A DNA stretch of 64,000 nucleotides from Blastocystis sp. Blastoise (Eukaryota > Protista > Bigyra: Opalinata). The stretch covers positions 1,674,001 to 1,738,000 of the forward strand of contig JBBPEB010000015.1 of the NCBI GenBank assembly GCA_039096225.1, given 5' to 3'. The translations under genes were made by a program, and so were the position numbers. The notes under the pieces are model-generated. The model did not search any database. It had not been told where the DNA came from and saw only the letters and a program-made list of their open reading frames with translations. Of this stretch, positions 2,558 to 40,640 are shown in pieces; positions within the stretch are counted from its first letter, which is position 1, and the number at the start of each line of letters is the position of its first letter.

Positions 2558-2799
2558 ATATATATATAGTAATGATCTTGCCCGCCTTCGTCGTCCCGGT
2601 TACGCATCCTACGTCATCAATAGAATTCTAAAAATGAAAGATTCATATCCTTTATATATATACTATTATATATATAACTATATATACTATTATATATATA
2701 ACTATATATACTATTATATATTTATAACTATATATATATCCTTAATAAAATACTGTGTCTAGCCCTCTGCGTCAAGTTTTAGGAATGCTGAGTCTTTAA
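1..2799 (+). CDS. Pumilio/PUF-family RNA-binding protein (5'-partial, multi-exon)
   Basis: Spliced exons give a low-complexity N-terminus followed by PUF repeats with motifs FGNYFFQ, HGSRCIQ, HANHVIQ, YGCYVLQ, YGNYVIQ, MSSNVIE and YASYVIN. The last intron is AT-AC; stop TAA at 2797-2799. Confidence 0.9.
2645..2753 (+). other. U12-type (minor) AT-AC intron in PUF gene
   Basis: Donor ATATCCTTT, branch site TCCTTAAT 7 nt before a terminal AC. Removal gives in-frame ...MKDS-VSSPLRQVLGMLSL*. Confidence 0.85.
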
Positions 2800-5700
2800 T
2801 AACTATATATATATATTACTTAATTCTTTATCTCTTTTATTCTTATTATATATTTTTATATTCATATATATATATATATAGATATTTATTTTGCTTTTTT
2901 ATTCCTCTTTCTTTTTGCTTCTTATTTCATGATTCTATTTAACAGATTTCAGTTCTTAGTCTATCAGTCATTTACATATTCACCTCTTGCTTTATATATA
3001 TAAATGTTTTATATATTTCATATGTAAAATATTTATTATTCATATTTTATTTTATTTTATTTTATTTGCTTTTATTTATTAAAAATTAAGAATAACTTTT
3101 TGTTATATTTAATATTTCATTTTTTCTATCCTCAATTCTTTATCTATATCAATATATATGTATATGTATATATATAATTCCTTGTCTCTTTATCTCTTCC
3201 AGATGACATTTTTATAGATATATATATATTTAAATTTATTTTTTTAAAATTATAATATTTAAACATTTAATATAAATTGTATATTTTTTTTTATATATAT
3301 AATTATTTCTTATTGTAAACCAATCAATAAATGTCTGGTTAAATCATTATTTTATTTATTTTATTTATCATTATTTTATTTATTTTATTTATCATTATTT
3401 TATTTATTTTTTTTATCATTATCTATCCAAGCTAAACTAATTCTATTTTTTTTTAAAGATATTTAAAAAAACGTTAAATATAATAATTATTTACTATTGC
3501 TATTAATATCTTTTCGTTTATATCTTTTTTTTTTTACATTATATATTATATTCTCTTCTATTAATTGAAATATAATTATTTCTATATGTTTTTATTTATC
3601 TGTATATATATATATATATATAATTTCTTTATAATTGCTTGATTCTACTCTATTACCTTTTATATACATTTATATTTATTTTTATTCTTATTCTTATTTT
3701 ATTTATACAAATATTCTTCTATAATTCTAGATATATATGAATGAATATATGCTTATTATTTTGGTTAATAATTTCGGTTTTTTTTATTTTTATTTTATGC
3801 TACATTCTATAGCAACTATATATATATATATATTCTTTTTTGTTTTATTTTTTTTTTAAATATATTTTCGCTATATATATAATAGTAGTAGTTGTAATTC
3901 ATATTTATATAGGCTCGCTATTATCTCTTGTTATATATATATATTATATAATTCCACATTGTATATCCATGATATATTCTGTTATTGTATATATATATAA
4001 ACCTTTCTATATATATGTATATATCTTTTTTGATTCTATATTTTCTTTATCTCTTCTTTTTTCATATGATTTACAAACTATTATGAATTACATATATATC
4101 TATATATATATATATATATTTATCTCTATACGATACATGTAATTCTATATGTACATTGCTACAATTCCTATTAAGAGTTTATATTTATATTTTATTTACT
4201 TTCAATATGTATACCTATATATTATATATATATTTATACATATTTTTTTGCTTATTTATATTCTATATATATAAGCACTATTTTACTTTTTTAAAATTTT
4301 CCATTATATATTTATATACCATTATATATATATAAAATATATATATTCCTACAGCTTCAAATAACAAACATGATTATTTCTTTTTTATTTAATATTTCTA
4401 CTTAATTCAAAAAAATTATTCTTTTTTTTTCTTGTGTTTTTTTTGTGCTTTTGTGTTCTTTGTCATAATTTATTAATTCATTATTCAATATTTAATATTA
4501 AATATTTAATATACATATTCTATATATAACTAGAAAAATACAATTTAAATAGTTTTTTCATTTTTTTAGATTGTATCCAGTTTATATATATATGTATATA
4601 TATTATTCTTTTAAAGCTTATATGAAAAATGTACATATATATTCTTAACCAATATATTAATTGTATATTCTTCTTTTATTTTTCTTATCAATATTCTTCT
4701 TTCTTTAGTTTTTTTATTGATTTAAGCCCTATTCAAGCTACTCTTTTATTTGCATACTCTTTTATTTTGATCGTTATATATATATATATATTGATTTTTG
4801 TTTTATTTCATTTTTCTATGTTCATGACAACTTTACAACTATTTCAAAAACAATTGTTTACATTTATTATTTATTATTTTTCACTTACAAATCAATTTAT
4901 ACTTATTTTTTTTAATATAAAAAAACATACTAATATAAATAGTTAAGATATAATTACATTTGTTTGTTGACACATATATGTTACTTATATATATTTTTTT
5001 TATTGAATTAGAATTGTTTTTTTGAATAGTATTTTTTCTTTTACATATTTTTATTCCATTGGTTATTAGGATAGTTTCTCATGATCTCAATAGTAGATTA
5101 TACGTATGATGACAATAATCATTACCGTTAATAGAACGTCAATGGAGTATCACCTATATTTTTTAGAGCCATTATTGCTAGATATACTTTGATTTTTATA
5201 ATCTTTTATCAAATGTTTCGTATATTACAGATTAATAAACAATCAAAAAATTATCATTTTTTTAAATGTTATATTTATTATTCCGTTAATTTATTTTTAA
5301 TAAAATTAAAAAAAAAAAAAAAAAAAAAAAATAAGTGTTGTGTTGTATGTCGTCTATCATGAAGATTCATGATTCTACATACTATTATGATAAAAAGATG
5401 AAAGTAATAATTGTTTTTTTTTATTGATCAGACTTAATATATGTCATAAATCATATATATATTTTATATTTTACATAAATAACTCAATATAATTTCAAAA
5501 TAATTAGAAAATAATAGTTGTTTCTAAAAAAGACGACATTTAAAAAAGTAATTAAAGAAAAAAAATTTCTATTTTGCTTGTTTCAACTGATATTCTATAG
5601 AATATGCTAATATTAATCCTTTATCACTTCATAACTCATAGAATAATATATTTGCATTAAATGAAATTTTTCATTCTATTATGGTACATATTTGAATGTA

Positions 5701-5944
5701 TGTCTCTATATATAAATATCTTTTATAAATAGAATAAAGGGTTATAAATCAATAAATGTATCTCGAAATCACTTGCATTTTATTGGATAAAGGATCGTTG
5801 TTTCCCACGGGAATATCCACAAAGAAATATCAAAATTATGATTTTGAAATGGGAAAAATCAATAATTGATGCCAATTTTATTTTTTTTCTCTTTTATTAT
5901 AGAGTATTATTTGATTTAAATCAAAGAATTAACATAATTAAAGA

Positions 5945-8900
5945 ATGGTAAATTTAGATATAGATATAAAATTAAAGAAACATTATTATTTTTGATTGTT
6001 ATAGTTTGGATTTGGAAAGAAAAAAACTACTGCTACTGAGCAACCTGAGTATGCTTTATGTATTTTTTTTATAACTAAAATAATTGTAGGAATACTCAAA
6101 AGAAGCAAGCATTTGGTTTTGATATCAAAGGTTTAGCTGCTAAAGGTTTTCAAAGAGAGAAACAAGAGACAGCAAAACCTGGAATGAATGATTTATTTGC
6201 TGGATTAAACAATGAAGCTCAAAAACAACAATCTAATTATCAACAACCTCAATTACCTGCTGTTCCTCCTAAACAACAAGTTCAACCTATTCATCAAACT
6301 AAACTTGCTCCTAATCAACAAGTTCAATCTAAATCAGGTATATAATTATTCTAATACTTGTTTATAATAGAAAGTAATTTATATATATATATATAGTACA
6401 AGATGATGAAGAAGATTTATTAACATTTTCTAGTCCTGCTCCTGTGGAGAATGTAGTTACTAAAGGTATATATATATTTAGTTATTCTATAAGAATAGGT
6501 TTACTATATATAATATTATTATTATGAATATCATTCATAATAATAATTTGATTATTCATAGTATTTAAACAAAATATTAATATTATTATTAATATATATA
6601 TTATTATTCATGAAAGAAATCATTATGATTTTGAATATAATTAGTGTTTCTATTACTATACTCTGTATTTATAGAAGAACCTACCCCTGATCCTATTCAA
6701 TTAGCTAAAGAGGAATTAGTTTCTGCTTTTTCTTTAAAAGGTGATGAACGTAAAGTGAATTTAGCTACTATACTTGTAAAAGATTTTAATATTGAATTAA
6801 ATGAAGAATTATTTAATTTTTTAGAATCTCTGAATCTTTCTATCGATGAGATGATGAATACAAATATAAATGCTAATGATAAGACAAACCCCTTAGAAGC
6901 TTTAAAACATGAGAGACAAGAGAAAATTACTATTCAACGTTCTTTATTACAAGCTCAAAAAGATTTAGAAAAGATGAAATCTCTTATGACTCAAGAATTA
7001 GAAAAGAAAACAAAATCTATTCAACGTGATTTTGAAAAGAAAGAATTAGAATTTAAGAATCAATTATTAGTAAAAGAAAAACAATTTGAAAGAGAAAAGA
7101 ATGATTGTATTTTAGATACAAAATCACGATTAACTGTTGAATATAATAATAAGTTAAAAGAACAAATAGATCAAGCTGTAAAACAAGCTCAAATCGAATG
7201 GGAAAAAACAAAGAGTTCTATTCCTGCTCCTTCTACTCCTTCTACTCCTACTACTCCTACTAATATGGTATCTTTTGAAGAAATGCAACAATTACAATCA
7301 ACAATGAATGAACAATATAAAGAACAATTAGATAATAAGGATAAAGAATTTAATGAATATAAAACAACCATGGAAAAGGAAATTGAACAATTAAAACAAG
7401 TATATATTATTTTATATATATTTAGTTTTTATTTATTAATATAATATATAATAATAATATATTATTATTATTATTATATATTATTATTTAAAAATAATAT
7501 ATAACATATGTTTTATTAAAGAAAATTCTATTATAAATATTTAATAATCTACTCTATTCTATACTATAGTCAAAGGAACAACTTCAAAATCAGTATATGA
7601 ATCAATTTAAGGATTTATCTGCTTCTAAAGAAAGTATATCTATTGAATTAAAACAACATATTGAAGTCCTTGAACAAGAAAAGAAGAAATATAAAGAAGA
7701 AATAGAGAATAATAAGAAGTCTCTTGAAGAATGTCAATCTTTACTTTCTCAAAAAGAAGAATTATGTACAGAACAAAGTAATAAATATAATGAATATGTA
7801 GAATCTTCTAAGAATGAAAAAGAGAATCTTATAAAGAAATATGATATGGAGAAACAACAAATAAAGAATGAATATGAAATGAAATTAACAAATTTAAATA
7901 AAGAATTAGAATCTATTCAAAAAGTATTAAAAGAAGAACGTGAGAATTTAAATAAGAATCAAGAAAGTGGTGAAGCTATTACAAATTCATTAAGACAGCA
8001 AATTACTGATTATAAATTAAAATTAGAAAAGATTAATAATGATTTAGAAGATAGTAAGAAGAATAATGAGAATTTGGAGAATGAAAAGAAATCTATTCTT
8101 GAAAATAATGAAATAGAAATTAATAAATTAAAAGAAGAATCTAAATCAGCTATGGATCAATTAACTAATGATTATAAATCAAAGAAAGAACAATATAAGA
8201 TTACTATTAATGATTTAAAGTCTCAAATAGATACTATTAAGAATGAAAAAGAATCTTTAGTTGATAATCATTCTAAAGAATTATTAGTTAAATCTGAAGA
8301 ATATAAAACACAGATGGATGCTTATACTATAAAGATGAATGAAACTACTGCTACTTATGAAAAACAAATAAATGAATTAAAGAATACACTTGAAACTAAA
8401 GAGAATGAATATAAGCAATTAGAAGAAGAAAAAGTAAAAGAAATTGAAAAAACAAAGAAATCTTATAAGCATGAAATAAAGAATATAAAGAATGAGAATG
8501 AAACTATTATAAATGAATTAAATACTAAATATAGTGCTTTAGAAGAAGAGAAGAAACAAGTAATTGAACAATATGAAAGTCAATTAACTAATAAACAACA
8601 AGAATATGAGAAATCTATTCAAGAGAAAGATAATGAATATGAACAATTAAAGAATAAATCTAAGAATGAACTTGAAACAATGACAAAAGAAAAAGAAGAA
8701 CAAATTGAATCTTTAACAACTAAATTATCTGATAAAAAGAATAAAGTAAAAGAATTAACTAAACAAATTGAAGAATTAAATAATAAATATACTGAAGATA
8801 TGGAATCTCTTAAGAATAAATATACAAATGAAATGAGTATTCAAAATGAAGAGAATATAAATAAAATGAATGAAATGATATCTACTCATCAACAAGCTAT

Positions 8901-9928
8901 ACAAAAGAAAGAAGAAGAATATCAAATAGAACTCAATAATATAAAACAGACTTATGAAGAAATTATTCAAAAGAATAATGAACAATATGAAACATCCGTT
9001 TCTACTATGAATTCTAATCATAAAAATGAATTAAATACTTTAGAAACTACATTAACTAATAAATATGAACAAGATATAGTTGAAATTAATAAGAAGAATG
9101 AAACAACACTTGAGGAACTTAAGAATGAATATAATAATAAGAATAAGAATGCTCTTGAAGAACAATCAAATGAATTTAAGAATCAACTTAATCAAGAAAA
9201 AGAAGAATTTAATAAGAAATTTGATACCATGTGTAATGTATGCTTATGTTAATTATTTTTTTTTATTTATGTTTGTATATAAGTATTGTTTTCATTATGT
9301 TTTTATAATAATATATAAATGCTATTTTTTAAAATTATTTTCTTTATTATTTTTTCATATTATTTGCATTATTATTAAATAGAGTATTATATATATAATA
9401 TATAATATATATATATAGGAAAAGGATACTCTTATTTCTGATTTAAATACAAAGATTGAAAATAATGAACAAATAATAAAGTCAATAAATGAAGAAATAG
9501 CTACTAAAGAATCTTCTATTACTACTTTAACTAATGATAAGAATTCTCTTACAACTTCTATTGAAGAAAAAACTACTATTATTAATGCTTTTAAGAAAGA
9601 TATTCAAGTTATGAAAGAGAAAGTAAGTCAATTAACTAAAGAAAAAGAACAATTAAATGAATCCTTAAAACTTCAAGAAAATGAATCTAAGACTCAAATA
9701 GAATCTATATATACTTCTTTAGAAGATAAACTTCGTTCTCAATTTAATTCTGCTATTGAATCTGCTATTCAAAATACTACTCAATATATTAAAGAAGAAT
9801 ATCAAAATTCTCTTATTCAGGAAATTCATAAAGTTGAAGATAAAAAAGTTCAATTAGCTTTAGCTGAAGGCAAATGCAATACTTCTTCTGCTGTTACAAC
9901 TAATCTTGAAAAGAAATATCTTAATTAA
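5945..9928 (+). CDS. Large coiled-coil protein, unknown function (multi-exon)
   Basis: ATG|GT start-codon intron, then FGFGKKK... ORFs 6644-7444, 7597-9252 and 9611-9928 are E/K/Q-rich heptad exons joined by GT-AG introns. Confidence 0.8.
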
Positions 9929-11000
9929 TTTATATATATATTTTTGTTTTCTTTTATTTAATATCTATATATATATTTTGAACATATCTTTTTATATGTA
10001 TATTTATTTTTGTTTTCTTTTATTTATGGTGTCGTTTTCTTTTGTAATCTATTGTTAATTATATTTGCTTTATTAAATTAAAAAAAAAATTATAAAACAT
10101 ATTTTGTTTTGTAGATAATATAATAACAATTGTGAAATAAAGATAAAAACAATTTAAATTAATTAAGAGAGCCGAAAGCATCAACAAATTTATCAACACC
10201 TTCAGCATATCTAAAAATTATGCAGAGCAAATCTCTTGATAACGATTCACCATTTCATATAGAAATGCGCCAAATAGGCATACTGCCCTTTATGACTGGA
10301 ATTTCCCATCAATACCGATTATAAAATTAACGAAACACATCTTGATTAGAAGTATGTTTTCCTGTTTATCTTTTTAGAGTATTATTTGTATATTGATGAA
10401 ATGAGTTTGAAACTGAAATGAAATGAGTCAAGATGACTTGTATAGTTTGAGAAAATGGTAATTAATTGATATTATAGATTATTTTTTTAATATGTTCAGG
10501 AAATCTGAAGAAAATGCATGTAATAATTGTAGAGAAGTTTGAAGAAACTATGTGCATAAAATAAACAATTTTTCTTCTTTATAGCTTTGAGTTTCAACAA
10601 AAATAGACATTCATTTTTGTTTATAGTGTATTAGATCGTGTATAGATTTGCTTAAATAATAGAAGCATGGTCAACGTTAACTTTGTTAACGGTTTGAAGC
10701 ATAATTGAAGCATGTTTATTTAGTAATGAAGTGAATAGTGAAATATTTACATGTTAAATGGTATTCAATAAATATCAGAATGGCCAATGTCTTGTGAAAT
10801 GAACTAAACTATCCGAAATAATATAATTGAACATAATTTTGATTAAACTAAAAAAATATTGAATAAAAGAGTATATACAAATATAGAACAACTAATCTAT
10901 TTGAAAAAATAAGCTAATATGAGTATTATTCCTTAATAAAAGTATTACAATATATAGAAAATATTTATAAAAAAACAATTTACAATATATATATTTAGGT

Positions 11001-11496
11001 TTATAATTGTTGAATGGATGACAGAATAGTGTTATCATTTTGATATTGTGTCGAAATAGAACGTAAAACTTGGCTAAATGATGATTTTATTTGAGGATCT
11101 ATATAATATTAAGTATAATAATAAGTGTAATAATAATAAGAAATAAAATAAAATAATAAATAATAATAAAAAAATATAAATAATATAAATAATAATAAAT
11201 AATAATAAATAATATAAATAATAATAAAAAAAAAGTAATAATGATTATAGCATCAGTGATTAAAAACAAATAGTATATATAATATATATACCTGCTTGAA
11301 TACATTCTGTAATAAAATCAATAACAATTTCTACTGTATCGGAATTCGTAAGATATATAGAAAGACAAGAATCACAAATAAAATATAATTTATTTTTAAG
11401 TATATATGCTTTAGATGTATCTATAGAAAAATAATAATTATATTATTATTAAATATATTAAATAAAAAAATAAATAAAATTAATAAACATAATATA

Positions 11497-11536
<40 letters not shown>

Positions 11537-14500
11537 ATTTCGTATAGCATTGTCTAATAGTTGAATAATATCATTTAAAACAGATATACTCAATGTATCC
11601 TTTTTATTAATACAATATTTAGTTAATTTTGAATAGATAGAAGAGTATTTATTAAGATAAGCAATACATTCATCATAATACGAAAGTCTGGATAACAAAT
11701 GCGCGGGAAGTAAAATGGCGGTCATTGAAGATGAGGAGATAATATATTCTGTTAGTATAGTAATAGCATAGGTATTAATATAATAAGGTATACATTCATC
11801 ACTATCTGCTATATTATATAAGTATATACATATATAATCAACAAGAATAGAATCAGTATGATTATTATATAAACAACGAAGTACAGAATTAACGGTATTT
11901 ACAGATGAAATAGATGATTTAATTGATTTAAATAATGATGGAGATGATTGTGTTCCTAAAATCATATGTTTCCAAACACGTAATATCTTTGTTTGTATAT
12001 TAATAATAGATACTGATATAAAAGAGATAGATAACGAAGAACAAATAGAAGTTGAGGCTATTGATAGAAGAGAAGAATCTATAGATAATAAGAATATAGA
12101 ATAAATAATATAAAAATTAAAAAAAAATATATTAAAAAAATATAAAAATATTTTTTATTTAATATATACTATTTTTGGTAAGAAGTATAAGAATATTAAG
12201 AAGTACATTGAGAACCGTTTCATTCTTCGAATAGAATTCGAAACAAAGAGAAAGAGAGGGAATAATTTGACGTGTAAGAAGTTTGTTAAATTGATTATCT
12301 GAAGTATTTAATATTTTTTGAATATTATTTAAAAGTTGAATTGCCATATTTTGTTCTTTATAAGTATATTCTAATACATAAGGATATATATAGATATCAC
12401 CTCTTTCTATTAAGTATGTAATATCATTTAATGATAAAGATAAACTATTTATATAATTATTGACTTCTGTAGGCTGTTCACGACATAAATATATTAATTT
12501 TTCTAATTGACTATTATTATTATTATTATTATTATTATTATCATTATTATTATTATTATTATTATTATTAGGAATAGAATTATTGATTGAAGATATAGAA
12601 CTCTTTGTATCGGAAGCTAGGGGAGAAAGCGCAGAAACGTTCTTGGTAGGGAGAATAGCTTCTGAAGGAGTTCTAGAATGTGTTCTATATTATTAAATTA
12701 ATTAATTAATAAATAAATAAATAACAATAAATAAATAAATAAATAACAATAAATAAATAAATAAATAAATATAATAATAAAAAAAATACTTTAATGAACC
12801 AACTGCTTGTTCTCTGATTTTATTTATACCATCAAATGTATTTCTATAATATAATATATATATATCTAAAAGTTATCTAATAAGAAAGAAAAAAAAATGT
12901 CTATAAAATAAAAACAAATCAAGTAAAACAATATAATAATAATATATACTGTATCTTTTGAACGGATTGAAGATCAGCATATAATTGTTGTTCTAATTCT
13001 TCTATACGTTTATCACGTTCTTGAATCATTTTCTCACGGGAATTTAACTCTGTTTGAAGAGAAGTAATTAAATCTTCGAATCCTTGAAGTTTTGCAGTCA
13101 TATCACTATATATAATATAAATAGTACTATAGAGAAAACAGAGACAAAATATTAACAAGATTTTCTTTAAATATATAAATATACAATATATGTATTAAAT
13201 AATAAATAAAAACATACCTTTGTTCTTGGATAGCTTGCTTATATTGATTATTTAATTGATCATATAATTTAGATTTATCATTATTCACGGTATTTAATTG
13301 ATTATTATTTTCTTCTTTTTCTTTTAATGATTGTGCTAATTCTTCTTTTTCTTGTATTAATTGTTTCTCTTTTTCCTCATATTCTTCAACATATGTTTCT
13401 AGTTGTCTTTTTAATTTCTTCATTTGATCTTCTAATAACATATTTCTTTCTTTAAATTCATTTTGATCTTTTTCTTGTTCACTATTCTTACTATATATTT
13501 GATATTGTAAATCTTTTATTCTTAATTCATATTCATCTTCTTTCTTTTTCCATTGTATTTTCTCATCTTCAAATTGATTCTTTAATGTTTCTAATTGTTT
13601 ATTTAATTGACTTATATTATTTAATAATTCAAATTGTTTATTTGAATAATTATTTATTAATTCTTTATTCTTTTGATTTTCTAATTCATGACTATTTATA
13701 ATTCGTTCTCTATTTTCTAATTCTTTCTGTAATGTATTCATCTCATCTTTATAGGATTGATCTAAATGCTGTTTCTCTTCTTCTTTCTCATGAATTGTCT
13801 TCTCTACTAAAGTTAAACGATTTATATAATCACGCTCTTTATTCATATTCTCATCTCTTTCATTTTTAATTATATTATTTAATTCTTCATTTTCTTTCTT
13901 CAAATCATCCAATTCTTTTTCTAATTCTTGTATATGTTTAGAATTATCACTATATATATATGATAGCATTATTAATAATAAATAATAAATAATAAATGAT
14001 AAATGATAAAATATAATTATATATAACAAAAAATTGAATACATTTTTTCTTGTTCATAAAGTGATTTATTTTCTTCTTCTCTTTGAATAATCTTTGCTAT
14101 TTCTTCTTCTTGTTCTTTCTTTAAATGAACTATTTCTTGTTCTTGATTTTGTTTTAACTCATTTATATTATTATTATTTTCTTCAAGAATTTTTGATATT
14201 TCATTAGATTTATCTTGATTATTAGTATTTAATAGAGTATTAGTTTCTTCTAAATCTTTAACTTTCTTTTTCTCTCCTTGTAATTCATCTTCTTTCTCAT
14301 TAAGAAGTGAAGTAATTTGATTATTTTTATCTTTTAAAGAATTTTCTACTTGTTTCATTTCTTCCTCAAAATCTGTATATTTTATCTGAATATCTTCTAA
14401 TTGTTGCTGATTTTCTTGTAAACTCTTCAATAAAACATTATTCTTTTGAATTAATTCCTCATTTTGGTCTTTTAACTGTTTAATTTCTTTCTCTTTCTCT

Positions 14501-18990: not shown

Positions 18991-21900
18991 ATGCCTACAA
19001 TAAATGTTCATTGTTCTACAAATCCAATAAATTCAGAAAACATTATTTATGTCAATGGAAAGAAACCTAGCGTCAATTCATCAAGACTAGTCCTTCTTTC
19101 AATAAGAGAGCAACAAGATGAAGATGCTACGAAACAAATAATTCTATTCAAACCAATAATTAAGGAATCTATTCCTGATTCTTATGCTTTCATTGAGACC
19201 TTTCACGAGTATGATATTAAAGATGGAGAATATGAAGTTCAAATAATTCCAAAGTATTCCGTTCCTGTGTATAAGTCTGCTCTAGTTGTAGTAGATAGCA
19301 TTGAATTAGGAAGTTCATTAGATATGACACATTTTCTTCATGATCAATTATTAAATCGTATTGTTAAACAAAGAGATGTAGTGAAACTAAATACATTACA
19401 AGGAAAATCAATAACTGTTGATATCTATTGCCATTCATTTAAACAATTGTAAACTATATAGTTATTATTCTATATAATATGAACCTATATTTTGAAAATA
19501 ATAATTATATATATATATAGATCTAATAATGATATTTATTCATATGGTGTTATTAGTAAATCAACATATATATATTATTCTAAGAATGTTCTTTCTTCAA
19601 AATCTCATTCTTCTCTTTCTATTTCTGTTCCTTCTTCTTCTTTATCTGCTATATCTACGAAAACAGAGCCATTATTTATAAATACTTTATCGATACAAAG
19701 ATTATATAATACTTTAGATTGGAATTGTGAATTATATAAAAAATCTGATTCTTTAATTATATCTGTAAGTTTTATTTTGTTATTATATACTCTTTTTATT
19801 TATTATGTTTTTTTAAATGTTTTTTATACATTTAGTTTATTTTATATTAAAATAATAATTATTAATTATTAATTATTAACTAGTATTATTAATTATATAA
19901 TTATAATTATATACTCTATATAATCAATGCTTTTTTTAAAATTCTATATATCTATATAGTCAACGAATAGTCTATTATTATATGGACCTCCAGGAACAGG
20001 AAAACAATATAGTATTGAACATTATTTTGAAAAGAAATCAATTCCCGTGGTTAAAGTGGATCCTTGGGAATTAGCTGTTCAATATGGAAAAGATATATAT
20101 ATAGGTCTTCAAAATATATATCGTCAATTATCTCAATTTAATTATTCTGTATATATATATACTTATTATAATGAATATTAGTTTATAATAAATATATTTA
20201 GATTTTACTTATAAAACCCTTAGAGAGTTTTTTCCCTCGTTTATCGTCTGAAATTGATCTGAATTCAGGTGAAGATGATGAATTCGATAATTCTGATAAT
20301 TATAAACGTCAATATATGGAATATATTGAATTCATATTAAAAGATATTCAAACAAAAAATAATATATGTATATATCTAGTTGTTTTCGCAAAATATTATA
20401 TATACTATATATATAGGTATAATAGCTATATCAAGTAATATTTCTTCTGTGTCTCCATCAATTATCAAATACTTTGAAGAAAAGGTATATATATGTGGTT
20501 ATTCATATTTATATATTTATTCTTATATATGTATGATTCATTAAGTATTATTTATATATATTATTATCTATATATCTATATATTTATATTAATAGATTGA
20601 ATTTTTCCTTCCAAATACTGAAGAAACTTTATCCTTTTATACTTATATAAATAAATTATTTCCTTCTTCATTAAATACTCAAGATATACAATTCTTATCA
20701 AGATATACGTATATATGTATATAATATAATAATACTATATTTATATATATATTATAGACATAATTATACTTATCGAGATATATATACATTATATTCAACT
20801 ACATATATAAATAAACAAATTCAAATATCTTCTTCTTCTTCTTCTTCTTCTTCTTCTTCTTCTTCTTCTTCTCTTCTATCCCTTCATGATATTCAACAAA
20901 CATTATATACATATAAACCAGATATTCAATTACTTTCTAATTATAATTTAGATATATCTATACCTCGGAATGATTGGTCAACTATGGGAGGAATGAAAAC
21001 AGTCAAACAAATACTAGAAGAAAGCGTTTTATATCCTATTCTATATAAAGAAGTAAGTATACTATATATGTGTATATTTATTTATTTATTTATTTCATTT
21101 TATAATATATATTTATATAAGAATAATATGTTTATTCTAATTATTTATTTTTTTTTATAGTTATATTCTTATTTTAATATATTTCCTCCCACGGGTATAT
21201 TATTATATGGTCCTCCTGGTGTTGGAAAAACCGCGATTATTAAAGGTTTAGCAAATCGTTGTGGATATAATTTTATTAACGTTCAAATGAATAGTATTGT
21301 AGAGAAAGAAGTTGGTGGGAGTGAATTGAAATTAAGAGAATTATTTAAAAGAGCTATTCTATCTAGGTATATATATATTAAGTTAAAGAAATGTTTTAAT
21401 ACAAATATCATATATGATGATTTGAGATTTATATAGAGTATCTATATAATAAAAGAAATTCTATGTTTTTTAGATAAATATTATGAAAATACTATTAAAC
21501 TATATTCTATATTTTAATACAATTTATAGTCCATGTATTTTATTTTTTGATGAAATTCAATCGATATTTTCGTCACGTGATTCTTCCGGTAACGGTTCCA
21601 AACAACTCATTTCTCAATTACTTTTACAATTTGATGAATTAAATACAATTCAAAGAAATAATAATCATTCAAAGAAAAGTATATTAACATAAATGCTTCT
21701 ATTGTTTATATATTTATTATTTAAAAATATATATATATTTATATTCTATTTATTATATAGATAATCATGTTCTAGTTATTGGCAACACAAATTGTCCATG
21801 GGTATATATATATATATATATTAAATAATAACAGTTTTAATTATTATATATTTATAGTTAATTGACCCTTCCTTATTACGTCCAGGAAGATTTGATAAAT

Positions 21901-22092
21901 ATATTTATATATATATTAATCATAGTTGTTATTTTAATTAATATATATATTTATATTGATCTTCCAAATGAAGAAGAAAGAGAAGATATTTTATATATAT
22001 ATTTAAAAGATTATAATCATGATTCTATCAATTTTAAAGAATTATCACAACGTATATATATATATTTAAGATATATATAATTCCTTTTCATT

Positions 22093-22124
<32 letters not shown>

Positions 22125-22929: not shown

Positions 22930-25543
22930 ATGGAGAAAGACTACGATGAGAATGAGGAAACTCCTATTCCAGAGGATATAATTCCTAATTTTGAGCCTTT
23001 TGAAGATGCTTTGCTTCATGATAATGTTGAAAGTGTATGTGCATAGTATTTCAATCATGATTATGGTTATAAATAGTTATTAAATTTATTGAATGGCGAT
23101 CCATTGGCTGTATCTACCTTATTTTACAAAGGTGATTCTATTTTACATTATGTATATATATCTATGATTAAATTAAATAATTGTTAATAATTAAATATCT
23201 GTTTATAGGCTTGTCGTTACAATTCAAAGGATATTTTACATCGATTATTAGAGTCTGGTGTAAAGCCTGATATAAGGAATGAAAATCATCTCGAACCAAT
23301 TCATGTAGCTGCTATGAAAGGAAATGTTGTTCTAAGTAATTGACATTGTTCAAAGTTAAATATAGTATATTTATATAGTGAATGATTTAATTAATCATGG
23401 TGCATCTATACTTGCTAGAGATGACAAAGGATCATCTCCAATTCATTATGCTGTTCAATCTGGTATTTTTTTATTGTGTTTTTTTTTCAAAATGTAAATA
23501 TAATAATTGTCTATTCATATATATTATATAGGTAGTTTAAGTGTAATATATTTATTAATGCAAAAAGGATGTACTTTACAAGAACGTGATTATAAAGGTA
23601 AAACACCTATTATGATAGCTGCAAAATATGATCAACTTATTGTATATATAATATTATTATTCTTATTATTTTATTTTATTTTATGTGTTTATTATGGTTT
23701 TCTTATATATATATATATATAATAATAATTATTATGATTATAAAGGCATTTGATTGGTTGATTGAGCACCATGCACGTATCTTAGATCAAGATAGTGAAG
23801 GAAACACAGTACTACATTGTGCTGTCGATTGTGGTAGCGAAAGTATATATTTGTATTTATAATTATATATAGAAGGATATATACTATAATTAATAAAATC
23901 ATATTTTAATAAATAATATTAATATATATATATATATAGGTATTATTAAGAGTATATTAGATAATATATATGGAAAACAATTAACGAGAACTGTTAATTT
24001 TAGAATGCAAACCCCTTTACAGGTATTTACATATATATATATAAAACATATAATTTCAATCTATATACATGAAGATTTTTCTACATATTATTATAATATA
24101 TATAAAAACATATAATTTCAATCTATATACATGAATATTTTTCTACATATTATTATAATATATATAAAAGCATATAATTTCAATCTTTATAAATAAACTT
24201 TAATATATATATATATAGTTAGCTCAGAAGAAAACGGAGAGAGCAACCTATGATGTTTTAAAATATAAAAAGATATGTAATTATTTATATCGATTTACAT
24301 ATCATGGTATATATGCTACAATATATCGTTATATACAAACACATACAGCTATTCTGTTATTTCCTTTATTTGGAATATATGGATTATATATACATTTTCA
24401 TTATATATTACCTTCAATGATGGATACTTCTTTATTTTATTTATATATATTCATTACTATAATAACATTATCCTTATGGATATATTTGGTGTTTTCGGAT
24501 CCTGGTACTATTCTTGATAAACATCAAAATCCAAATCCAAAAGTGAATCATTCCCAGGATTATCGTACATGTTTTGAAGAAATAATGAATGGTCAATCTC
24601 GTGAAACTCGATTATTATGTCCAAGTTGTCGAATAGAAAGACCCAGAAGATCCAAACATTGTAATCAATGCAGAAATTGTATACTAAAAATGGATCATCA
24701 TTGTAGGTTTATATTATATTTATATTTTATTATTATGTTTATTATGCTTATTATTATGTTTATTATTATATTTATTATTATGTTTATTATGCTTATATTT
24801 TATTATATTTATATTTATTATTATATTATATTTTATTATGTTTATTATGTTTATTATTATATATATATAGGTCCATGGATTAATAATTGTGTAGGAAAAA
24901 GAAAATATCCTTTACATATATATATATTAAATATATATATATATTAAATATAAATCATGAATAATAAAATGAATGTCTTTAATAATATATTCATCGTCAA
25001 TTCTTAGTCTTCTTAGTATCTTGTGCATTATACTTATGTTTATCTTATTATATGCTCTATATATTTATGGAAAAGAATTCATTTCCTACTGTAGGTAATA
25101 ATAACGATATACAAACTGATATTCTTATTTTTATGTTTTATTATATTAATGCAGCATGGCTACTTGCGTATATATATATATAAATATATTTAATATATAT
25201 TAAATAATAAATATGTATAATAATAATCAATGCGAATCTATATTCTATTATATATCTAGTTATTGTATTTATTTATTATTCTTTCAAATTATACAAATAA
25301 GTCGAAATATCACTACAAATGAAACTATTAATTGGAGACATTATTCATATTTATTAATTAATGTATATATATATATAATTGTAATTTATAAATAAACTAT
25401 ATATGTTTATACTATTCTTTTCTTTATATCATTACTATATATAGGGTCGTTCATTTCATAATCCTTATGATAATGGTTTCTTTTGGAATTGGATCGATTT
25501 CTGGGGACTCTCAAGACATAATTATGAACTTATATCAACTTAA
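22930..25543 (+). CDS. Ankyrin-repeat DHHC palmitoyltransferase (Akr1/ZDHHC17-like)
   Basis: Ankyrin exons (SILHYACR, EPIHVAAMKG, SPIHYAVQSG, TPIMIAAK, TVLHCAV), then [37 protein letters not shown], TTNE and NPYDNG motifs. Confidence 0.92.
24035..24190 (+). repeat. Intronic tandem repeat, about 61 bp x 2.5
   Basis: ataaaacatataatttcaatctatatacatgaa...ttttctacatattattataatatat is repeated. Confidence 0.7.
24905..24990 (+). other. U12-type intron with AT-AT termini in DHHC gene
   Basis: Perfect donor ATATCCTTT and branch TCTTTAAT followed by AATATAT. Removal restores the conserved NCVGKR-NHRQF. Confidence 0.85.
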
Positions 25544-30414: not shown

Positions 30415-30460
<46 letters not shown>

Positions 30461-30753: not shown

Positions 30754-31159
30754 AAGGCTTTATATACTATATTATTAAAGATATATTTATATAGTTATTA
30801 TTATATCTATATAGGATCTTCCATTCTCCATACTTTTCTTTTTCTTCTTTTCTATTCATTTTATAAATATTTATTATTATCAATTAAATGATATTTCTTC
30901 ATATTGTATTGTATATTTCATATTGTCTATCCTATTTTATCATTTGCTTCTATTTTAAACATTCTTTTTCTATTTGCATTTTTGTTCCTCATTTGATTTT
31001 ACACAGATATTCTATCTTTTAACATAATACAAACATCCGTTCGTATTCTATTTCAAATCTCCTATTTTAAAAAAGTAGTATTTAAATTTAAACGAAAAAA
31101 AAACAAACAAAAAAAACCGAAAACATTTTTTTTTATTTATACAGTTTAATTAAGGCATT

Positions 31160-32278: not shown

Positions 32279-32321
<43 letters not shown>

Positions 32322-33078
32322 GATAATCACATATGTATACCTCGTGCAGCTCATGCAGATTGTCCTATATGTAAAGAAGATATTTTCTTATCTACAAAAG
32401 CAAGTTGTATAATGAAATGTGGTCACAGAATACATTCTAGTTGCTTTGATAGATATTTAAATGTATATATAGTCTTCTATTTATAATAATAATATTTATT
32501 TTTTGTTATTTAATTCATTTAATGGTTATTCTAGTTATTCGACTAATCAATATTGTAATAAATATTATAATTATAATAATAGATAATAATAACATAATAA
32601 TAAATATATATATAGTCAGGTAATTATACATGTCCATTATGTAAGAAATCGATAATAAATGTAGATGATTATTTTAAAAGAATAGATAGACATTTATCCC
32701 ATGAAACTATGCCTAGAGAATATAAATACTGGAAACAAATGATATTATGTAATGATTGTGGAGATAAGAATATTGTACCTTTTCATTTTATTTATCATAA
32801 AGTATATATATTGTTACTGATATTTTATGTATATTCAATATATATATTTTTATGTATATAAATATATATTGATTTTTTTAATATATGATACTATATATTA
32901 TACTAGTATAAATGATTCAATATAACTCTCATACTCTTCTAGTGTTTGAATCCAGAATGTCGTAGTTATAATACTCAAGTGATGGGGGGTATTATTAAGC
33001 CATCTCCTGAAGAAGAAAAACGATTGATTCAAGAAGATGAAGAGAAACAGGCTAGAGAAGCACAAGAACGATTGAATA

Positions 33079-33114
<36 letters not shown>

Positions 33115-33716
33115 GTGATCATGATAATAATATTGATAATAATAATAATAATAATAATAATAGTGATCATACTAGTGATAATGATGAATATGATGATGAA
33201 TATGATGATGATATGATGATGAATGATAGTGATATAAGTATAAATGAACATAATACGGATGATGAATCTCAATTTAGGCATCCAAGTCTTTTAGATCAAT
33301 TACGTAATTTATTTCCAGGTGCTGATATATTCTCAAATGATTTTTATGGTCCTTCTCATGAAGATTCTAATCACATGCCAGTCTTCTCCAATTCAGTACA
33401 GTCATTTGATGATGATGATGATGATAATAATAATGATAATAATAATAGTATCTCAGATAATAGTAGTATCTCAGATAATAATGATATCTCAGATAATAAT
33501 AATAATATCTCAGATAATAATGATATCTCAGATAATAATAATAATATCTCAGATAATAATAATATCTCCGATAATAATGATATCTCCGATAATAATAATA
33601 ATCTCTTAGATTCTAATTCCGATATAGATAATTATGAAGATGGCGAATCCCATAGTATATATGATTCTATTGGTGAGGATAATATATCAAATTCAAGTAA
33701 TGAACATGAAGAATAA
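31160..33716 (+). CDS. RCHY1: RCHY1/Pirh2-like CHY-zinc-finger RING E3 ligase with a long acidic D/N tail
   Basis: GCKHYIRGC..CPEC..YTCRLCHDE, YYCDICHFW, HCPYCNICRVG, CPICKE..KCGHRIHSSC..YTCPLCKKS, ILCNDC..FHFIYHKC...CRSYNT. Confidence 0.92.
33445..33602 (+). repeat. Coding minisatellite (ISDNNN/ISDNND), about 8 copies
   Basis: atctc(a/c)gataataat units of 18-21 bp. Confidence 0.8.
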
Positions 33717-34075
33717 AATAATCATCATTATTTATTATATATATATCTATTTCATTATATATTGTTTTTGTATGTTTCTTCTTTTATTATAATGCATATA
33801 CATTAATATATATATATGTATATTAAAGTATCAAAACTGTGTTTTTCTTAAACTATATACAAAACATATTTGAGATTTATTGTTTTAGTGAATTCATTGT
33901 TTTATTTGAATATATTTATTGATTCCAAAAAACATAATTTAATATTGTTTGTTAAATGTAAAATTTTATTCAATAATAAAGAGAACAACAAAATATGTAA
34001 CTAAAGACAACTTAACAAATTGTGAAAACATAAAGAACAAAAAATAACATAAAGATTAAACAAACAAATAACAAT

Positions 34076-35466
34076 TTAACGTCGTTTTCCTCCTTTTTGA
34101 GGACCTTTCCCTCCTTTCTTTTGGCGCTGTTTACGTTGATTCTTTCTCGATTGCTGATCTTTACGCATAAGATCAAGTTCATCTTCAGCATCTGATCTAT
34201 ATATAAAGTATTATATATATAAGTCATTCATTTATATATATAATATATATATACCCATCTTTTTTAGTACTAAATAATTGTTTGTCATATTGTTCTTGAC
34301 TATATATATATTATATAAAATATGATATATATATATATACGTTATTTTTCCTTTTTTAAATAATTTATACAAATGTTCTTCTTTATCTAATTCATCCCAT
34401 TCATCCTATATATATATAATATAATAAATATAATATAATAAATATAATATAAATATAATAAAATATATAAATACCATAATACGTTCATGTTTTCCTTTTC
34501 TTAAACGTTTCTCTGGAACTTCAGGTTCAACAGCCTTTCGTTTCTGTTGCTATATATATAGAAATATAATAATATAGTCTATAATAATAATAGTATAGTC
34601 TATAATATAGTATATAGTTATAAAAATATACTTTCTTTTCATTATATTCTTGTTGTTTCTTTTCTTCCCATTTTTTCTGATCTGCTTCCATTCGTATCAA
34701 TCTCTGCTTCTCACGAATCTTATCTGTATAACTATATATATATTTTAATATATATATTTTTTCATTCAAAATACAGAATAATAGTTTATCATAGATTTAA
34801 AATGAATAATAATATGAATCATAATAATAATATATATATACGGAATAGTATTCAGATCTACTTTTTCTTCTATAAAATCAATAGTTTTATTTTTTAATTC
34901 GGAGGTTTTAGGAAGACGAAGTAAACAATAAGATCTAGCTAAAGCACCAAGATTCCAATCTTCAAATCGAAGAATAAAATTACAATCGTGATTACGATAT
35001 CCCTAAAGGAAGAAGAAGATATAGAATAATTATAAAAAAATATAAAAAGTAATAGAAATATATAAATAATAATAAAATATAAATAAAAAATAAACAGAAT
35101 AATAAATATAATATATACTCTTATATCAGCAACAAAAGCAATTCTACCGGCATCCATAATTTCTCTTTCTTTACGCACGTGCTCTTTAATGGTATCTAAT
35201 AATTGTGTACTTCTTTGTTTTAATTGTTCTTCTGTTTCTTCTGTTTTATAAAGAGTTAACGGAACTCCTCTCTTTTCAATAAAGGGTATATATGCATTTT
35301 CAGAAGGAGTTAATAATAATAAAGATTCACCCTTACGACCTATAGAAGAGAATATAGAGTCAATATATAGATGATATAGTATATTAATAATAATAATAAT
35401 AATAATATTTTTTTTAAATACAAAAAAAAAATATCTTTCATAAAATACAAAAAAAAAAAAAAAAAA

Positions 35467-35497
<31 letters not shown>

Positions 35498-37202
35498 TAT
35501 ACCTGCTCTAGCTGTTCTTCCTATTCTGTGTATAAAGAAAGAGGGATCTTGAGGAGGAGCGAATTGAATGATATAATCGACATCTGGTATATCTATACCA
35601 CGTGCAGCAAGATCAGTACAAAATAATACAGCAGCTATAGATAAATAGAAGGAAATTAAAATATATTTGATAACTATCATAGAATATATAGAATGATTCT
35701 AATATTAAATACTATAAATGAATTTTAGCATTAAATTATAAATGATATATAAATAAATAAATATATACCTTCAGAATTTCTAAATGTTTCCATTGTTTTT
35801 TCTCTTCTTTTTTGAACCATTCGTCCATGTAGATTCATAATTAGTAATTTATTTGGATTAATATATTTAAAAGCTAAATGATAAAAATCAACAGAAGCAC
35901 AAGTTAAAAAGAAAACAATAATTTTAGAATTTGGATGATCATTTATAAATTGAGATATCTATATATATATATAAGTAATGAAAATAATAGTAGTATAAGT
36001 ATTATAATATAGAAAATATGAATTTTAATTATTTAAAGGTTAATATAAGTATTTAAAATATTTATATATATATATATAAAATGAATAAAAATATATATAC
36101 AACACCAATTTTTTCATCATTTTCACAGAATATATATTGATTCATTAATCCTAAAGGAACACTTTGAATGTTTCCATCTTTACGTTTGACTTCTACTTTA
36201 ACAGAAACAGGGTTACGAAGACCCGCTCGAACTAATGAGGTCATACCCTATATATACATATATATACATTATATACATTATATATATATATAATATACAT
36301 ATATATATACATAATATACATATATATATATATAATAAACAATACATACATATACATAATAATAAACATTATATATACACTATTATATAATCATACTATA
36401 AATTATTTCTTAGAAAAATAATAATAAATAATTATATATATATATATATACATTAGCTTCAGTAGCCGAGAATAATCCGGTACGTCGAAGTTTTGGAAGT
36501 GTCTGAATAATATGCTGAATAGTATCACCATGACCAAGATCCTATATATATTATAATTATATTATTATTATTATCAATAATAATAATATTATTATACAAT
36601 GATAATAAAAATAAACATATAAATATACTAGTAATTCATCGGCTTCATCTAAAATAAGTACTTCTAAGTTTTTACATTTAAAATCTTTTCCTGTTCGTTG
36701 CATAATATCCCAAAGTCGACCTAAGAATATATTCATAATCATTAAAAAAAAAAGAACATAAAATAATTCATATATATATACCAGGTGTACTAATAATAAC
36801 TTTAATTTCATCTCCTTGAAGAGAATTAATATCTTCTTGAACATCAGTACCTCCTGTGAATAAAAGAAGTTTTATTCCATTGATATGTTTCATGAAATTT
36901 GTACCAACTGACATCGTTTGATTTGCAAGTTCTCGAGTAGGAAGAATAATGATTGAACCTATTTGTCCTCCACTTAAATTATCTTTTTTTCTTAACAAGA
37001 TATCAAAAACAGGTATCAAGAAAGCTAAAGTTTTTCCTGATCCAGTACATGCCTCTACATTTACATCTTTATTTGCTAAGAAAAGAGGAATAACAGCAGA
37101 TTGAACTGGAGTCATTCCAGAAAAACCAAGATCTGCGACCGTTTGAAGAATTCCATCATCAAGTTTAGGTTTCACACTATCGAATGTTTTTACGTTTGAC
37201 AT
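34076..37202 (-). CDS. DDX55: DEAD-box RNA helicase DDX55/SPB4
   Basis: [75 protein letters not shown]; basic C-terminal tail. Confidence 0.93.
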
Positions 37203-37775
37203 AAATTATACAATAGTAAAGATTATATGTGAAAAAAGAACAAATTCTATGGAAAATTATTAATTTGTGAAAATATAGACATAGTGACTGGCTTTATCTC
37301 AGAATTTTATGGTTATCATAAAAAAGTGAGAAAAGTTCATTTACAACTAGATTTATGAAATATGTTATATCTCAAACATAATAAAACTACTTTGATGTTG
37401 TAATCCAATAGAATATTGATTTAAAAAAAGAAATAACAATAATTTACAATTATGAATGAAGTATATTTTTTGCATTGTATTGTTCTATATTATTTCTAAA
37501 GGCTGTTAAAACATGATCAACATCATTTGATACTTTTATACATTCATTTTAAAACAAAATCTTCTTCTATACGTTTTCTTTTCATTTTTATATACAGTAT
37601 GATAGTATTTCCTTAAAAACACATATAGACAGAAAAAATGATTATTGTCTTTAGGAAGACGATGATTCTTGGTTATTCTATGAATAGTCTCCATAATTGA
37701 AGATAAAACCGTGAGACAAGATATCAATAGATATTTTGAAATCAGTATAATTTATTTGTAGATTTTAATCTAAGA

Positions 37776-40640
37776 ATGGATCTTTATTCTTATTTTTTAT
37801 GCGATGTCACATTTGGTGAAGGTTCCCTTTACTTTAGTGTCAAAAAGAATGATAACGACCTTCCGATAGTCAAGAGTTTCCGTCAAACGGATAAAGGATA
37901 CGCTGCTCCTATTGAGCGTCTTGATGCTATTCACGAAGATGACTTCATTATTGCTATTAATGGAGAAAGTACATTAGGTTTACCTTTCAAAGAAATCAAG
38001 GAGAAATTAGCTAAGACTCCAAGACCTATGACAATTCGTTTTGCGAAACCTATACCTAAGAATGAATGGAAGAAAATTGTTTTACCTTCTGGTGAGACTA
38101 TCACTAAACAATGGGGTAACATTGATATATCTTTTATATATATATAATATATATTATATAACGTATATATATATTTAAATTATATGAATAATTAAAGACT
38201 TTTTTAAATATATTTTCAGTTACTACTCATTATAAATTGATATATAAAAGATTATATTCTTTAATTAATATTTACGGTTATCTCCCTGTAAAGAAATATG
38301 ATTTATCCAGTCATGATGCTGATTCTTTAGTATCTCTTGAAGAATGGAAAGAAAATGCTACTCCCTTAACACCTCTTACAGTAAAAGGTGATTTATTTGA
38401 ATGTGATATACGTCAACATTGTTTTAATGGTTCTCCTGATATGATTACACGTGCTTTATATTGGAAAATGTTATTAGGATATTTACCTTATACTCCTAGT
38501 AAATGGGAAGAGAAAATAAAGAATAGTATAGAAGAATATAAAGAATTTGTTAATGAATTTATTATAAATAAGAATAAAGAATGTGGTAAAGAGAATTGTG
38601 CTATTGTTCCTAGTCCTATTGATTTAACTTGGAAGAATAAAGATAATAAAGAAGAATCTGATTCTATAGGTAATGGTGATGATGAAGACAATGAAAGTCC
38701 TTGGTCTAAATCATTTGGTGAAACTGAATTACGTGATATTATATGGAAAGATACTCAACGTACATATAGTGATTTAGAATTCTTTAATCAAGATAGTAAA
38801 ATTATGTTTAGTAGAATGTTATATATATTTGCAAAATTAAATCCCGGTGTAAAATATGTTCAAGGAATGAATGAACTTTTAGCACCTTTATTTATGGTCT
38901 TTAGTCAAGCTAATAAAGATGTATATATAGGGGTTTTTTTATTTATTATTTTATTATTATTTATTTATTATTTATTATTAAATATAAAATAATTATATAT
39001 ATATATATAATAGAATGGTGGTGAAGAATTATGTGATGAAGTTGAAGCTGATACTTTTTTCTGTTTTAATCAACTTATGTCAGAATGTAGAGATTTATTT
39101 ATAAGACAAATGGATTCAGATAATACAGGAATGTATGATATTCTAGAAATATTTTTATTAATATATATATATATATTTATTTATTTATTTTTTTGTTTTT
39201 GTTTTTATATTTTATGTTTATTGTTTTCTATTATTATATATATATTTTTTTTTTTATTGTTAAAAGTCTATGTTTTTTATTAATAAATCTGTTTCTATAT
39301 GAGTATATATTATTTAGTAATGGTGTATTTAATAAATTAGATAATTATATAAAGATCCATGTTAAAGATGCTGCTGATGTTTTAGTATTTTATTATATTT
39401 ATTATATTTATATATTTATTTTATTTATTTATTTATTATTTTTATTTATTTATTATATTTATTTATTTATTATTTTTATTTATTTATTATATTTATTTAT
39501 TTATTTGTTTATTATATTTATAATTATTGTATTAATAAGAATAATTATTCTAAAGTATAATAATATAATAGGATGAACAAGAGTTAAGTGTTCAGTTTTA
39601 TGCTCTTCGTTGGATGACTACGTTATTTGCTCGTGAATTCGATTTAGAACATACATATCGTGTTTGGGATTGTTTCTTTGCGGATCCAGATCGTTTCCAA
39701 TTTATGTATTGTTTTGGAACTGCTATGATTAAGAGAGTTAAAGATAAAATTATTATGAATTCTTTTGGTGAAAATATGAAATTATTACAAAATTATGAAT
39801 GTGAAAATATTAATAAAGTTTTAAAAACTGCTAATAAGATTCGTGATCATGAAATTAAACGTACTAATGGCATGCAAGAAGAAGTCACTAGTATTGATGC
39901 TATTGTTGGAAAATCAAAAGGTATTTTTTATATAATATTCATTTATTATTATTATTTATTTATTTATTTATTTTTAAATATAAATGTTATTAATTCTATT
40001 AAAAATCATTTGAATAAAATATATAAATATATTAGAATTTTTAAATAAGAGTAAAGATATTGTTGGTGAACAAGTTAAGAAAGGTTGGTTTAACTTCAAA
40101 ACAGTGGGTCTTCCTAAACTTAATGAATTAGGTATGAATATATTATTGATTTATTATTATTATATTTATTATTCTATTTATTATTATATTTATTATATTT
40201 ACTATTATATTTATTATCAATATTATTATTTTATTTATTAGTTTATTTATTATTATATATATTATTCTATTTAAATTTACATACTTTACTTTTTAGCTAA
40301 GACAACATTAACTAAGGCTACAGAGATTTCTAAGAGTGTTGAATCAAAAGCAAAGGAATTATCAGGTAAAGATTTTAAAGAAATTTCTCAAGAAATTACT
40401 ACTAAATCTAAGGAATTTGGTCAAAAATCTAAGGAATTTGGTCAAATGTCATTAGATAAAGGTAAGAAATGGTTTGGTGATGTCAAAGAAAAGGCTGAAA
40501 GTCAAATGAATAATATGAAAGAAAAAAATTCGAATAGAAAGCCTTCTAAAGTTGAAAAGGGTGATGAAATTGTTGTTACAGATACTTCTAGTGAAGAAGA
40601 AACCACTCCCAACGAAGATGAAGATGATACCACTATTTAA
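37776..40640 (+). CDS. PDZ-domain plus TBC (Rab-GAP, TBC1D13-like) protein
   Basis: N-terminal IHEDDFIIAINGES...PRPMTIRF (PDZ). TBC motifs RALYWKMLLGYLP, IWKDTQRT, KLNPGVKYVQGMNE, EADTFFCF and FYALRWMTTLFAREF. Confidence 0.88.
38127..38275 (+). other. Probable U12-type AT-AC intron in PDZ-TBC gene
   Basis: Donor ATATCTTTT, branch TTCTTTAAT 10 nt before AC, phase-0 join GNID-GYLP. An in-frame GT-AG alternative (38116-38219) also exists. Confidence 0.65.

Follow-up and report, generated by a model that had tools for sequence, protein, structure and literature searches.

Three interruptions of protein-coding genes in a 64,000-nucleotide stretch of the Blastocystis sp. Blastoise genome (C4:1674001-1738000, hereafter the window; positions are counted from its first nucleotide) belong, we conclude, to the ordinary U12-type introns of this genome, a reading to which we assign a probability of roughly 0.8. 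Their actual splicing, and its dependence on the minor spliceosome, are predicted from the DNA sequence. A fourth segment, which a preliminary description of the same DNA had grouped with these three, is probably a genuine intron, non-canonical and unclassified, whose removal is likewise predicted, and it is not to be counted as U12-type on present evidence. All four segments of that description are present, with the motifs quoted for them:

2645-2753, + strand: U12-type AT-AC intron (intron 1), 109 nt, phase 2; the final exon of a Pumilio-family gene, 14 codons long, follows it
24905-24990, + strand: U12-type AT-AT intron (intron 2), 86 nt, phase 2, in an ankyrin-DHHC palmitoyltransferase gene
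38127-38275, + strand: probable U12-type AT-AC intron (intron 3), 149 nt, phase 0, in a PDZ-like/TBC (Rab-GAP) gene
21901-21946, + strand: 46-nt non-canonical interruption (segment 4) in an AAA ATPase gene, with its start ambiguous over 21899-21911

The window displays a trait of the genus, and no local anomaly, in agreement with what has been published for Blastocystis ST1.

A genome-wide population of AT-AC introns

Genome-wide searches covered the 33.34-Mb, 34-contig assembly. Exact motif matches were tallied, each against a control in which the pattern was reversed:

ATATCCTT k-mer: 4815 observed, 4333 in the control
GTATCCTT k-mer: 869 observed, 1035 in the control
ATATCCTT, 25-200 nt, TCCTTAAT, 4-10 nt, AC: 87 observed, 2 in the control
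ATATCCTT, 25-200 nt, TCTTTAAT, 4-10 nt, AC: 141 observed, 7 in the control
ATATCCTT..TCYTTAAT, no 3' constraint: 333 observed, 96 in the control
GTATCCTT..TCYTTAAT (GT subtype): 28 observed, 14 in the control
GTATCCTT..TCCTTAAT..AG (GT subtype): 1 observed, 0 in the control
TAAC in place of TAAT at the branch: 26 observed, 20 in the control
ATATCTTT + TCCTTAAT + AC: 18 observed, 18 in the control
ATATCTTT + TCTTTAAT + AC: 82 observed, 94 in the control

The ATATCCTT k-mer exceeds its control by about 480, and the GTATCCTT k-mer shows no excess. When the 3' end is left unconstrained, the excess of paired ATATCCTT and branch motifs is about 237, near the AC-ended total, implying that ends other than AC are rare. 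Fifteen of 20 strict-motif introns that we fetched proved compatible with the reading frame under a longest-open-reading-frame rule, where chance would give one third, and 10 of these 15 lie in phase 0. With an AT-AC majority (333 matches versus 96, compared with 28 versus 14 for the GT subtype) and with phase 0 not avoided, the set is of the Blastocystis type. Roughly, then, the genome carries a few hundred U12-type introns, or about 0.5-1% of its introns. They are almost all AT-AC, biased toward phase 0 and provided with TAAT branch sites: the ST1 picture with local colour.

Several traits that the preliminary description had read from the four segments hold for the genome as a whole. The GT-AG subtype, which it had found missing, amounts to at most about 5%; TAAT, which it had seen in place of TAAC, leads by about 10:1; and the very short distance from branch to 3' end recurs in the 20 fetched introns, whose tails after TAAT measure 6-12 nt with a mode of 8.

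The window has a GC content of 21% and is very intron-rich; one AAA ATPase gene alone contains 12 GT-AG introns of the GTATAT...TATAG type. The earlier hand estimate of 100-120 introns in the window is plausible, GC-based segmentation having delimited 131 AT-rich islands of at most 400 nt. An automatic solver that sought canonical in-frame introns in these islands "solved" 129 of the 131, which is too permissive, and it was discarded. The k-mer excess predicts about 0.9 ATATCCTT-type introns for every 64 kb; with 2, or 3 counting intron 3, the window is not a significant cluster of U12-type introns.

Introns 1 and 2

Intron 1 begins with ATATCCTTTAT and ends with TATCCTTAAT followed by 7 nt that close on AC. 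Its branch core is TCCTTAAT, and the 7-nt tail falls within the genome range of 6-12 nt. It appears in the genome-wide list of ATATCCTT/TCCTTAAT/AC introns as C4:1676645-1676753, and because that motif pair is found 87 times against 2 in the control, the match is very unlikely to be due to chance. Its predicted duplexes have energies of -7.3 kcal/mol with U11 and -6.5 kcal/mol with U12, and the exact ATATCCTTT 5' site is found in both intron 1 and intron 2. Intron 1 adjoins the end of a Pumilio-repeat exon and is followed by 46 nt of exon-like sequence (about 43% GC) that encode 14 residues and a stop; without its removal, the reading frame continues into AT repeats. A further ATATCCTT site in the window, at 12387 on the - strand, was rejected as an intron candidate because it sits within an open reading frame.

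Intron 2 starts with ATATCCTTTAC and carries TCTTTAAT with a 7-nt tail that closes on AT, there being no AC in the 3' window; its U11 duplex has an energy of -6.1 kcal/mol. Such an AT end is a rare variant genome-wide: motifs of this type without an AC end stand near background, at about 105 observed against about 87 in the control, both being estimates obtained by subtracting the AC-ended counts from the count without a 3' constraint. Here the protein carries the argument. Upstream of intron 2 lies a micro-exon, read from the sequence:

24871-24904, + strand: 34-nt micro-exon; encodes (C)PWINNCVGKR(N), the DHHC motif core

This micro-exon stands between a GT-AG (U2-type) intron, which starts GTAGGT after "cat cat t" and ends TATAG at 24870, and the AT-AT (U12-type) intron 2. 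The exon before it aligns with solved DHHC enzymes as far as "DHH", and removal of intron 2 joins DHHC-PWINNCVGKRN to HRQFLVFL. The DHHC family is expected to show an N-x3-F spacing at this point, and only the exact excision of 24905-24990 keeps both the frame and this spacing: moving the 3' end by 3 nt in either direction breaks the spacing, and other shifts break the frame. On the predicted translation, intron 2 is therefore needed to restore the DHHC motif. A word search with the 161-aa DHHC exon returned no relatives, and the 35-aa exon after intron 2 had no match in the PDB.

The minor-spliceosome RNAs

The preliminary description had inferred that this lineage has a minor spliceosome, and the genome bears this out. 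It encodes the small nuclear RNAs (snRNAs) U11, U12 and U6atac and a divergent candidate for the fourth, U4atac. The sole U11 match in the genome is a gene inside the window:

10165-10293, - strand: U11 snRNA gene, Rfam RF00548, 62.9 bits (gathering score 39), full length
10337-10353, - strand: U11 upstream promoter element ACTTCTAATCAAGATGT, also present 41-48 nt upstream of U12, U4atac and U6atac

The 5' end of this U11, AUAAAGGGC, is complementary to the ATATCCTTTAT of intron 1. U6atac is likewise a single gene (C21:544821-544937, - strand; 63.8 bits with the Rfam model). The promoter element, in the form AACTTCTAATCA[AT]A[ACG]TGT, is common to all four loci at that distance before the RNA start, and U6atac additionally has a TATA-like ATAAATA. 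The branch-site box of U12, GAGUAAGGAAA, is canonical, and the U4atac candidate is complementary to U6atac over 13+3 bp through changes on both sides relative to consensus. Because of this shared promoter element, the conserved boxes and the U4atac/U6atac complementarity, we regard the U12 and U4atac loci as supported despite their sub-threshold scores. Among proteins of the minor spliceosome, CENATAC (PF14968) is found above the Pfam cut-off 414 kb upstream of the window; PDCD7 gave a match below the cut-off only and was not counted. A near-match to the U6atac core at C22:701236 proved not to be an snRNA. About 85 nt from the U6atac gene lies a strict-motif U12-type intron (ATATCCTT...TTCTTTAAT...GTAC; C21:544675-544737, + strand).

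Introns 1, 2 and 3 each possess a TCCTTAAC-like branch near the 3' end that could pair with the GAGUAAGGAA box of U12. In the mechanism that we propose, the U11 5' end (AUAAAGGGC) would pair with a 5' site of the form ATATC(C/T)TTT(AT); the unchanged U12 box (GAGUAAGGAAA) would pair with a T(C/T)CTTTAAT-type branch, with a G-U wobble where C became T; and the 3' cut would fall about 7-10 nt past TAAT, mostly at AC and rarely at AT.

The preliminary description had held that this machinery tolerates C-to-T erosion of its signals. That is supported for the branch site and not supported for the 5' site. At the branch, TCTTTAAT outnumbers TCCTTAAT (141 versus 87) while the U12 box is unchanged, implying that the C-to-T change is tolerated there as a G-U wobble. 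The 5' site shows no erosion: of the 18 matches to ATATCTTT with the strict branch, 11 belong to one repeat and about 4-5 are plausible introns, against about 80 for ATATCCTT. In short, the 5' site stays ATATCC, and the second C of the branch site is commonly T.

Intron 3 and the points against the assignment

Several observations weigh against our assignment of introns 1-3. Multi-copy families swell the TCTTTAAT count of 141. U12 scores 46.8 bits, under the Rfam gathering score of 53, and the full-length U4atac candidate, at 29.7 bits, was recovered at a relaxed threshold and is also under its gathering score. The 5'-site-pairing box of U6atac reads AGCCG, not AAAGG (consensus positions 11-15), and its predicted pairing with ATATCCTTTT is -5.5 kcal/mol, compared with -8.9 kcal/mol for the consensus RNA. 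The short last exon after intron 1 is without homology support, no homology check having been made. Finally, the motif pair of intron 3 occurs at chance frequency genome-wide (82 against 94 in the control), and this intron has an in-frame GT-AG alternative at 38116-38219.

Intron 3 starts with ATATCTTTTAT and carries TTCTTTAAT with a 10-nt tail that closes on AC; its core motifs are ATATCTTTT and TCTTTAAT, the tail length is within the genome range, and its U11 duplex, at -4.6 kcal/mol, ranks among the top 1% of background. The closest protein relatives of the TBC exon are open reading frames on ENA and Logan metagenome contigs, one of which has the 30-31-nt introns that are a hallmark of Blastocystis. 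The closest of all, L004, has a 57%-identical exon and a much higher GC content than the window. Directly after its homologous "...VD" codon stands a 59-nt segment, ATATCTTTTA...GTAC, for which AT-AC is the only canonical in-frame solution, and L004 shares with intron 3 an identical ATATCTTTT at an identical codon. This T at position +6 is thus conserved in a GC-richer genome, which argues that it does not stem from recent AT-driven erosion.

These comparisons bear on the possibility that splicing here mostly uses U2-type GT-AG sites (GTAACA...TTTTCAG), with the AT-AC look being coincidental or marking a minor alternative. Besides the in-frame fit and the chance-level motif counts, it would be in keeping with L006, a more distant relative, in which a GT-AG intron of 31 nt occupies this position (L006 9985-10015); another relative is intronless there. 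However, the upstream exon ends in ...D in all three species, and the GT-AG model would lose this D. It would also add a 56-nt segment of 15% GC that has no counterpart in 12 relatives. Because of this, and of the conservation in L004, we consider splicing mainly at GT-AG unlikely and favor the AT-AC intron 38127-38275 with good, sequence-based confidence.

Segment 4

A 12-nt direct repeat at both junctions of segment 4 leaves its start ambiguous. Its removal gives ...LLRPGRFDK-Y-IYIDLPNEEER, colinear with the relative L013, whose neighbouring exon is 64% identical and which reads LLRPGRFDK-YI-FVDLPNEEER; the RPGRF codons of L013 differ from those of the window only synonymously. Because the flanks are colinear, a piece of length 1 mod 3 must be removed here. 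The only GT-AG in-frame solution deletes RPGRFDK, the arginine-finger motif, and among the known terminal classes only AT-AT fits. At this codon L013 has a 33-nt GT-AG intron (L013 about 4540-4572).

The preliminary description had read segment 4 as a U12 intron at the far end of a graded series, in which all four segments would be minor-spliceosome introns in progressive C-to-T decay, with segment 4 reduced to wobble-only pairing and read by an AT-adapted minor spliceosome. In its favor, AT-AT is the sole class that spares RPGRFDK; TTTTAAT lies 8 nt before the proposed end, which is the modal spacing of the genome; and the TCTTTAAT branch variant is the commoner one despite an unchanged U12 box. 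Yet the pairing of segment 4 with U11 (-0.6 kcal/mol) and U12 (-3.7 kcal/mol) is at background, both values being at the 25th percentile of AT-rich 46-mers. Its branch, TTTTAAT only, is indistinguishable from background, and its 5' site is not of the U12 type. Nor do the other segments form a series: intron 2 has the local consensus branch, and the T at +6 of intron 3 is also present in the GC-richer relative. Sites of the ATATCTTT form amount to about 5% of ATATCCTT with the strict branch and show no excess with TCTTTAAT, and the orthologous position of segment 4 in L013 is a GT-AG intron. Compensatory changes in U11 or U12 toward T-rich signals are absent, the U12 box being canonical and the U11 5' end being AUAAAGGGC. 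We therefore think a common decay of all four segments quite improbable.

Somewhat less improbable, though still unlikely, is that segment 4 is not normally spliced. The gene might be decaying, a low-complexity AT tract might have been misassembled here, or the segment might be an allele that arose recently by slippage or insertion. The direct repeat at its junctions would suit such an origin, as would its lack of recognisable splice signals and its length, which at 46 nt is below that of the gene's 12 other introns; and the assembly was made by Flye from R9 Nanopore reads with polishing. However, a spurious insertion of 46 nt would be unusual after short-read polishing, the rest of the AAA ATPase gene is intact with its 12 canonical introns, and the relative has an intron at this very codon. 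An unclassified non-canonical intron thus remains the probable reading of segment 4.

Two positions, then, differ in intron kind between this genome and its relatives: that of intron 3, AT-AC here and GT-AG in one relative, and that of segment 4, an unclassified interruption here and GT-AG in another. The GT-AG introns concerned, of 31 and 33 nt, lie in relatives with 30-nt introns, and the two positions are candidates for intron-type conversion within Blastocystis.

Comparison with known minor-intron systems

The introns described here resemble the AT-AC U12 introns of animals and plants in their ATATCCTT 5' site, paired by U11; in a TCCTTAAC-like branch paired by the GAGUAAGGAA of U12 with a bulged A; in the absence of a polypyrimidine tract; and in a 3' site that is set by a short distance from the branch, with non-AC ends such as AT tolerated. 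The preliminary description had inferred that distance from the branch sets the 3' site; this is established behaviour of U12 introns and no novelty of the lineage. In animals and plants, most U12 introns are GT-AG and avoid phase 0, and the branch usually lies about 10-15 nt from the 3' site. Here, by contrast, the distance is about 9-10 nt, TAAT takes the place of TAAC, and AT-AC is the predominant subtype.

The closest likeness is to Blastocystis ST1, in which 346 U12-type introns, all four minor snRNAs and seven specific proteins were reported (Gentekaki et al. 2017, PMC5608401), and in which a later survey counted 253 minor introns, 77% of them AT-AC and 49% in phase 0 (Larue & Roy 2023, PMC10639083). 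The two genomes share hundreds of minor introns, at about 0.5-1% of all introns, with a strong excess of AT-AC; a phase-0 bias (10/15 here versus 49% in ST1); and the presence of all four minor snRNAs and of specific proteins. The expansion of minor introns asserted in the preliminary description is real relative to most eukaryotes, but it is not new, being at the level published for ST1. Unlike those of ST1, which are about 40 nt long, the introns here span 57-200 nt and are about 85-90% AT; the GT subtype looks rarer still, at 5% or less, compared with 23% non-AT-AC introns in ST1; and TCTTTAAT has become the branch consensus. In U6atac, the 5' site box also departs from consensus, the comparison in this case being with Rfam and not with ST1. 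A report on tortoise Blastocystis isolates gives 21-23% GC and longer introns and does not mention U12 introns or minor splicing (2025, PMC12129017). Minor introns are also unusually numerous, and their signal preferences altered, in another protist, Physarum polycephalum (Larue, Elias & Roy; bioRxiv 10.1101/2020.10.12.336362), but its level is not comparable with the few hundred found here. What we describe is not a new kind of system.

Repeats and neighbouring genes

A repeat of more than 9 kb is present on several contigs (C26:36001-45900, C13:1253501-1263400, C8:2325801-2335700) in copies that share about 96% identity. It contains two U12-type AT-AC introns separated by 4.3 kb; the genome-wide list includes the first of them at least 12 times, and duplication of the repeat multiplies U12 introns. 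Its open reading frames gave no Pfam match. At least 11 identical copies of a 91-nt stretch starting ATATCTTTCTTTGATTCTGAAC are present, several of which lie close to the end of a contig (C1:401420; C6:24434 and 53192; C7:20347; C10:124 and 25959; C11:9410; C20:16308; C31:561489 and 793398), which suggests a subtelomeric or dispersed repeat family. Elsewhere in the window are the following, both judged by eye:

59998-61425, + strand: intact 475-aa open reading frame, pogo/Tc5-type DDE transposase-like
51697-52773 and 55055-56209, both - strand: two paralogous first exons ending WLGKEKKWKLLFR, apparent N-terminal parts of TLDc-type proteins in a tandem gene pair

A possibly remodelled spliceosome

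Pairing of a U6atac AAGGA box with positions +4 to +8 of the 5' site was not found, so that the usual step in which U6atac pairs with the 5' site is not evident; this result concerns the machinery rather than any single intron. The 5' site consensus is unchanged. The 5' end of U12 reads CGGCCUC, not AUGCCUU, and its CGGC is complementary to the GCCG of U6atac (-7.1 kcal/mol); this match could be a remodelled contact or a coincidence. One highly speculative reading, which we hold to be improbable, is that the minor spliceosome of tortoise Blastocystis has been remodelled, with the U6atac box replaced, a complementary CGGC in U12, the branch moved to TCTTTAAT and GT-AG introns nearly extinct. 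If this were true, the 5' site would be read by U11 alone, highly degenerate AT-AT introns like segment 4 could be genuine substrates, and the repeat of more than 9 kb could be spreading the two U12 introns that it carries.

Implications

The minor-intron phenomenon published for Blastocystis now extends to what is probably the deeply divergent, AT-rich tortoise lineage. Correct gene models in this lineage need AT-AC and, rarely, AT-AT introns, as the DHHC catalytic motif and the arginine-finger region of the AAA ATPase illustrate, and the two positions that have another kind of intron in relatives offer concrete cases for the study of intron-type turnover. Overall, a 5' site that remains ATATCC despite extreme AT pressure, combined with a branch that drifts to a wobble form, amounts to a natural experiment on which contacts of the minor spliceosome tolerate G-U pairs.

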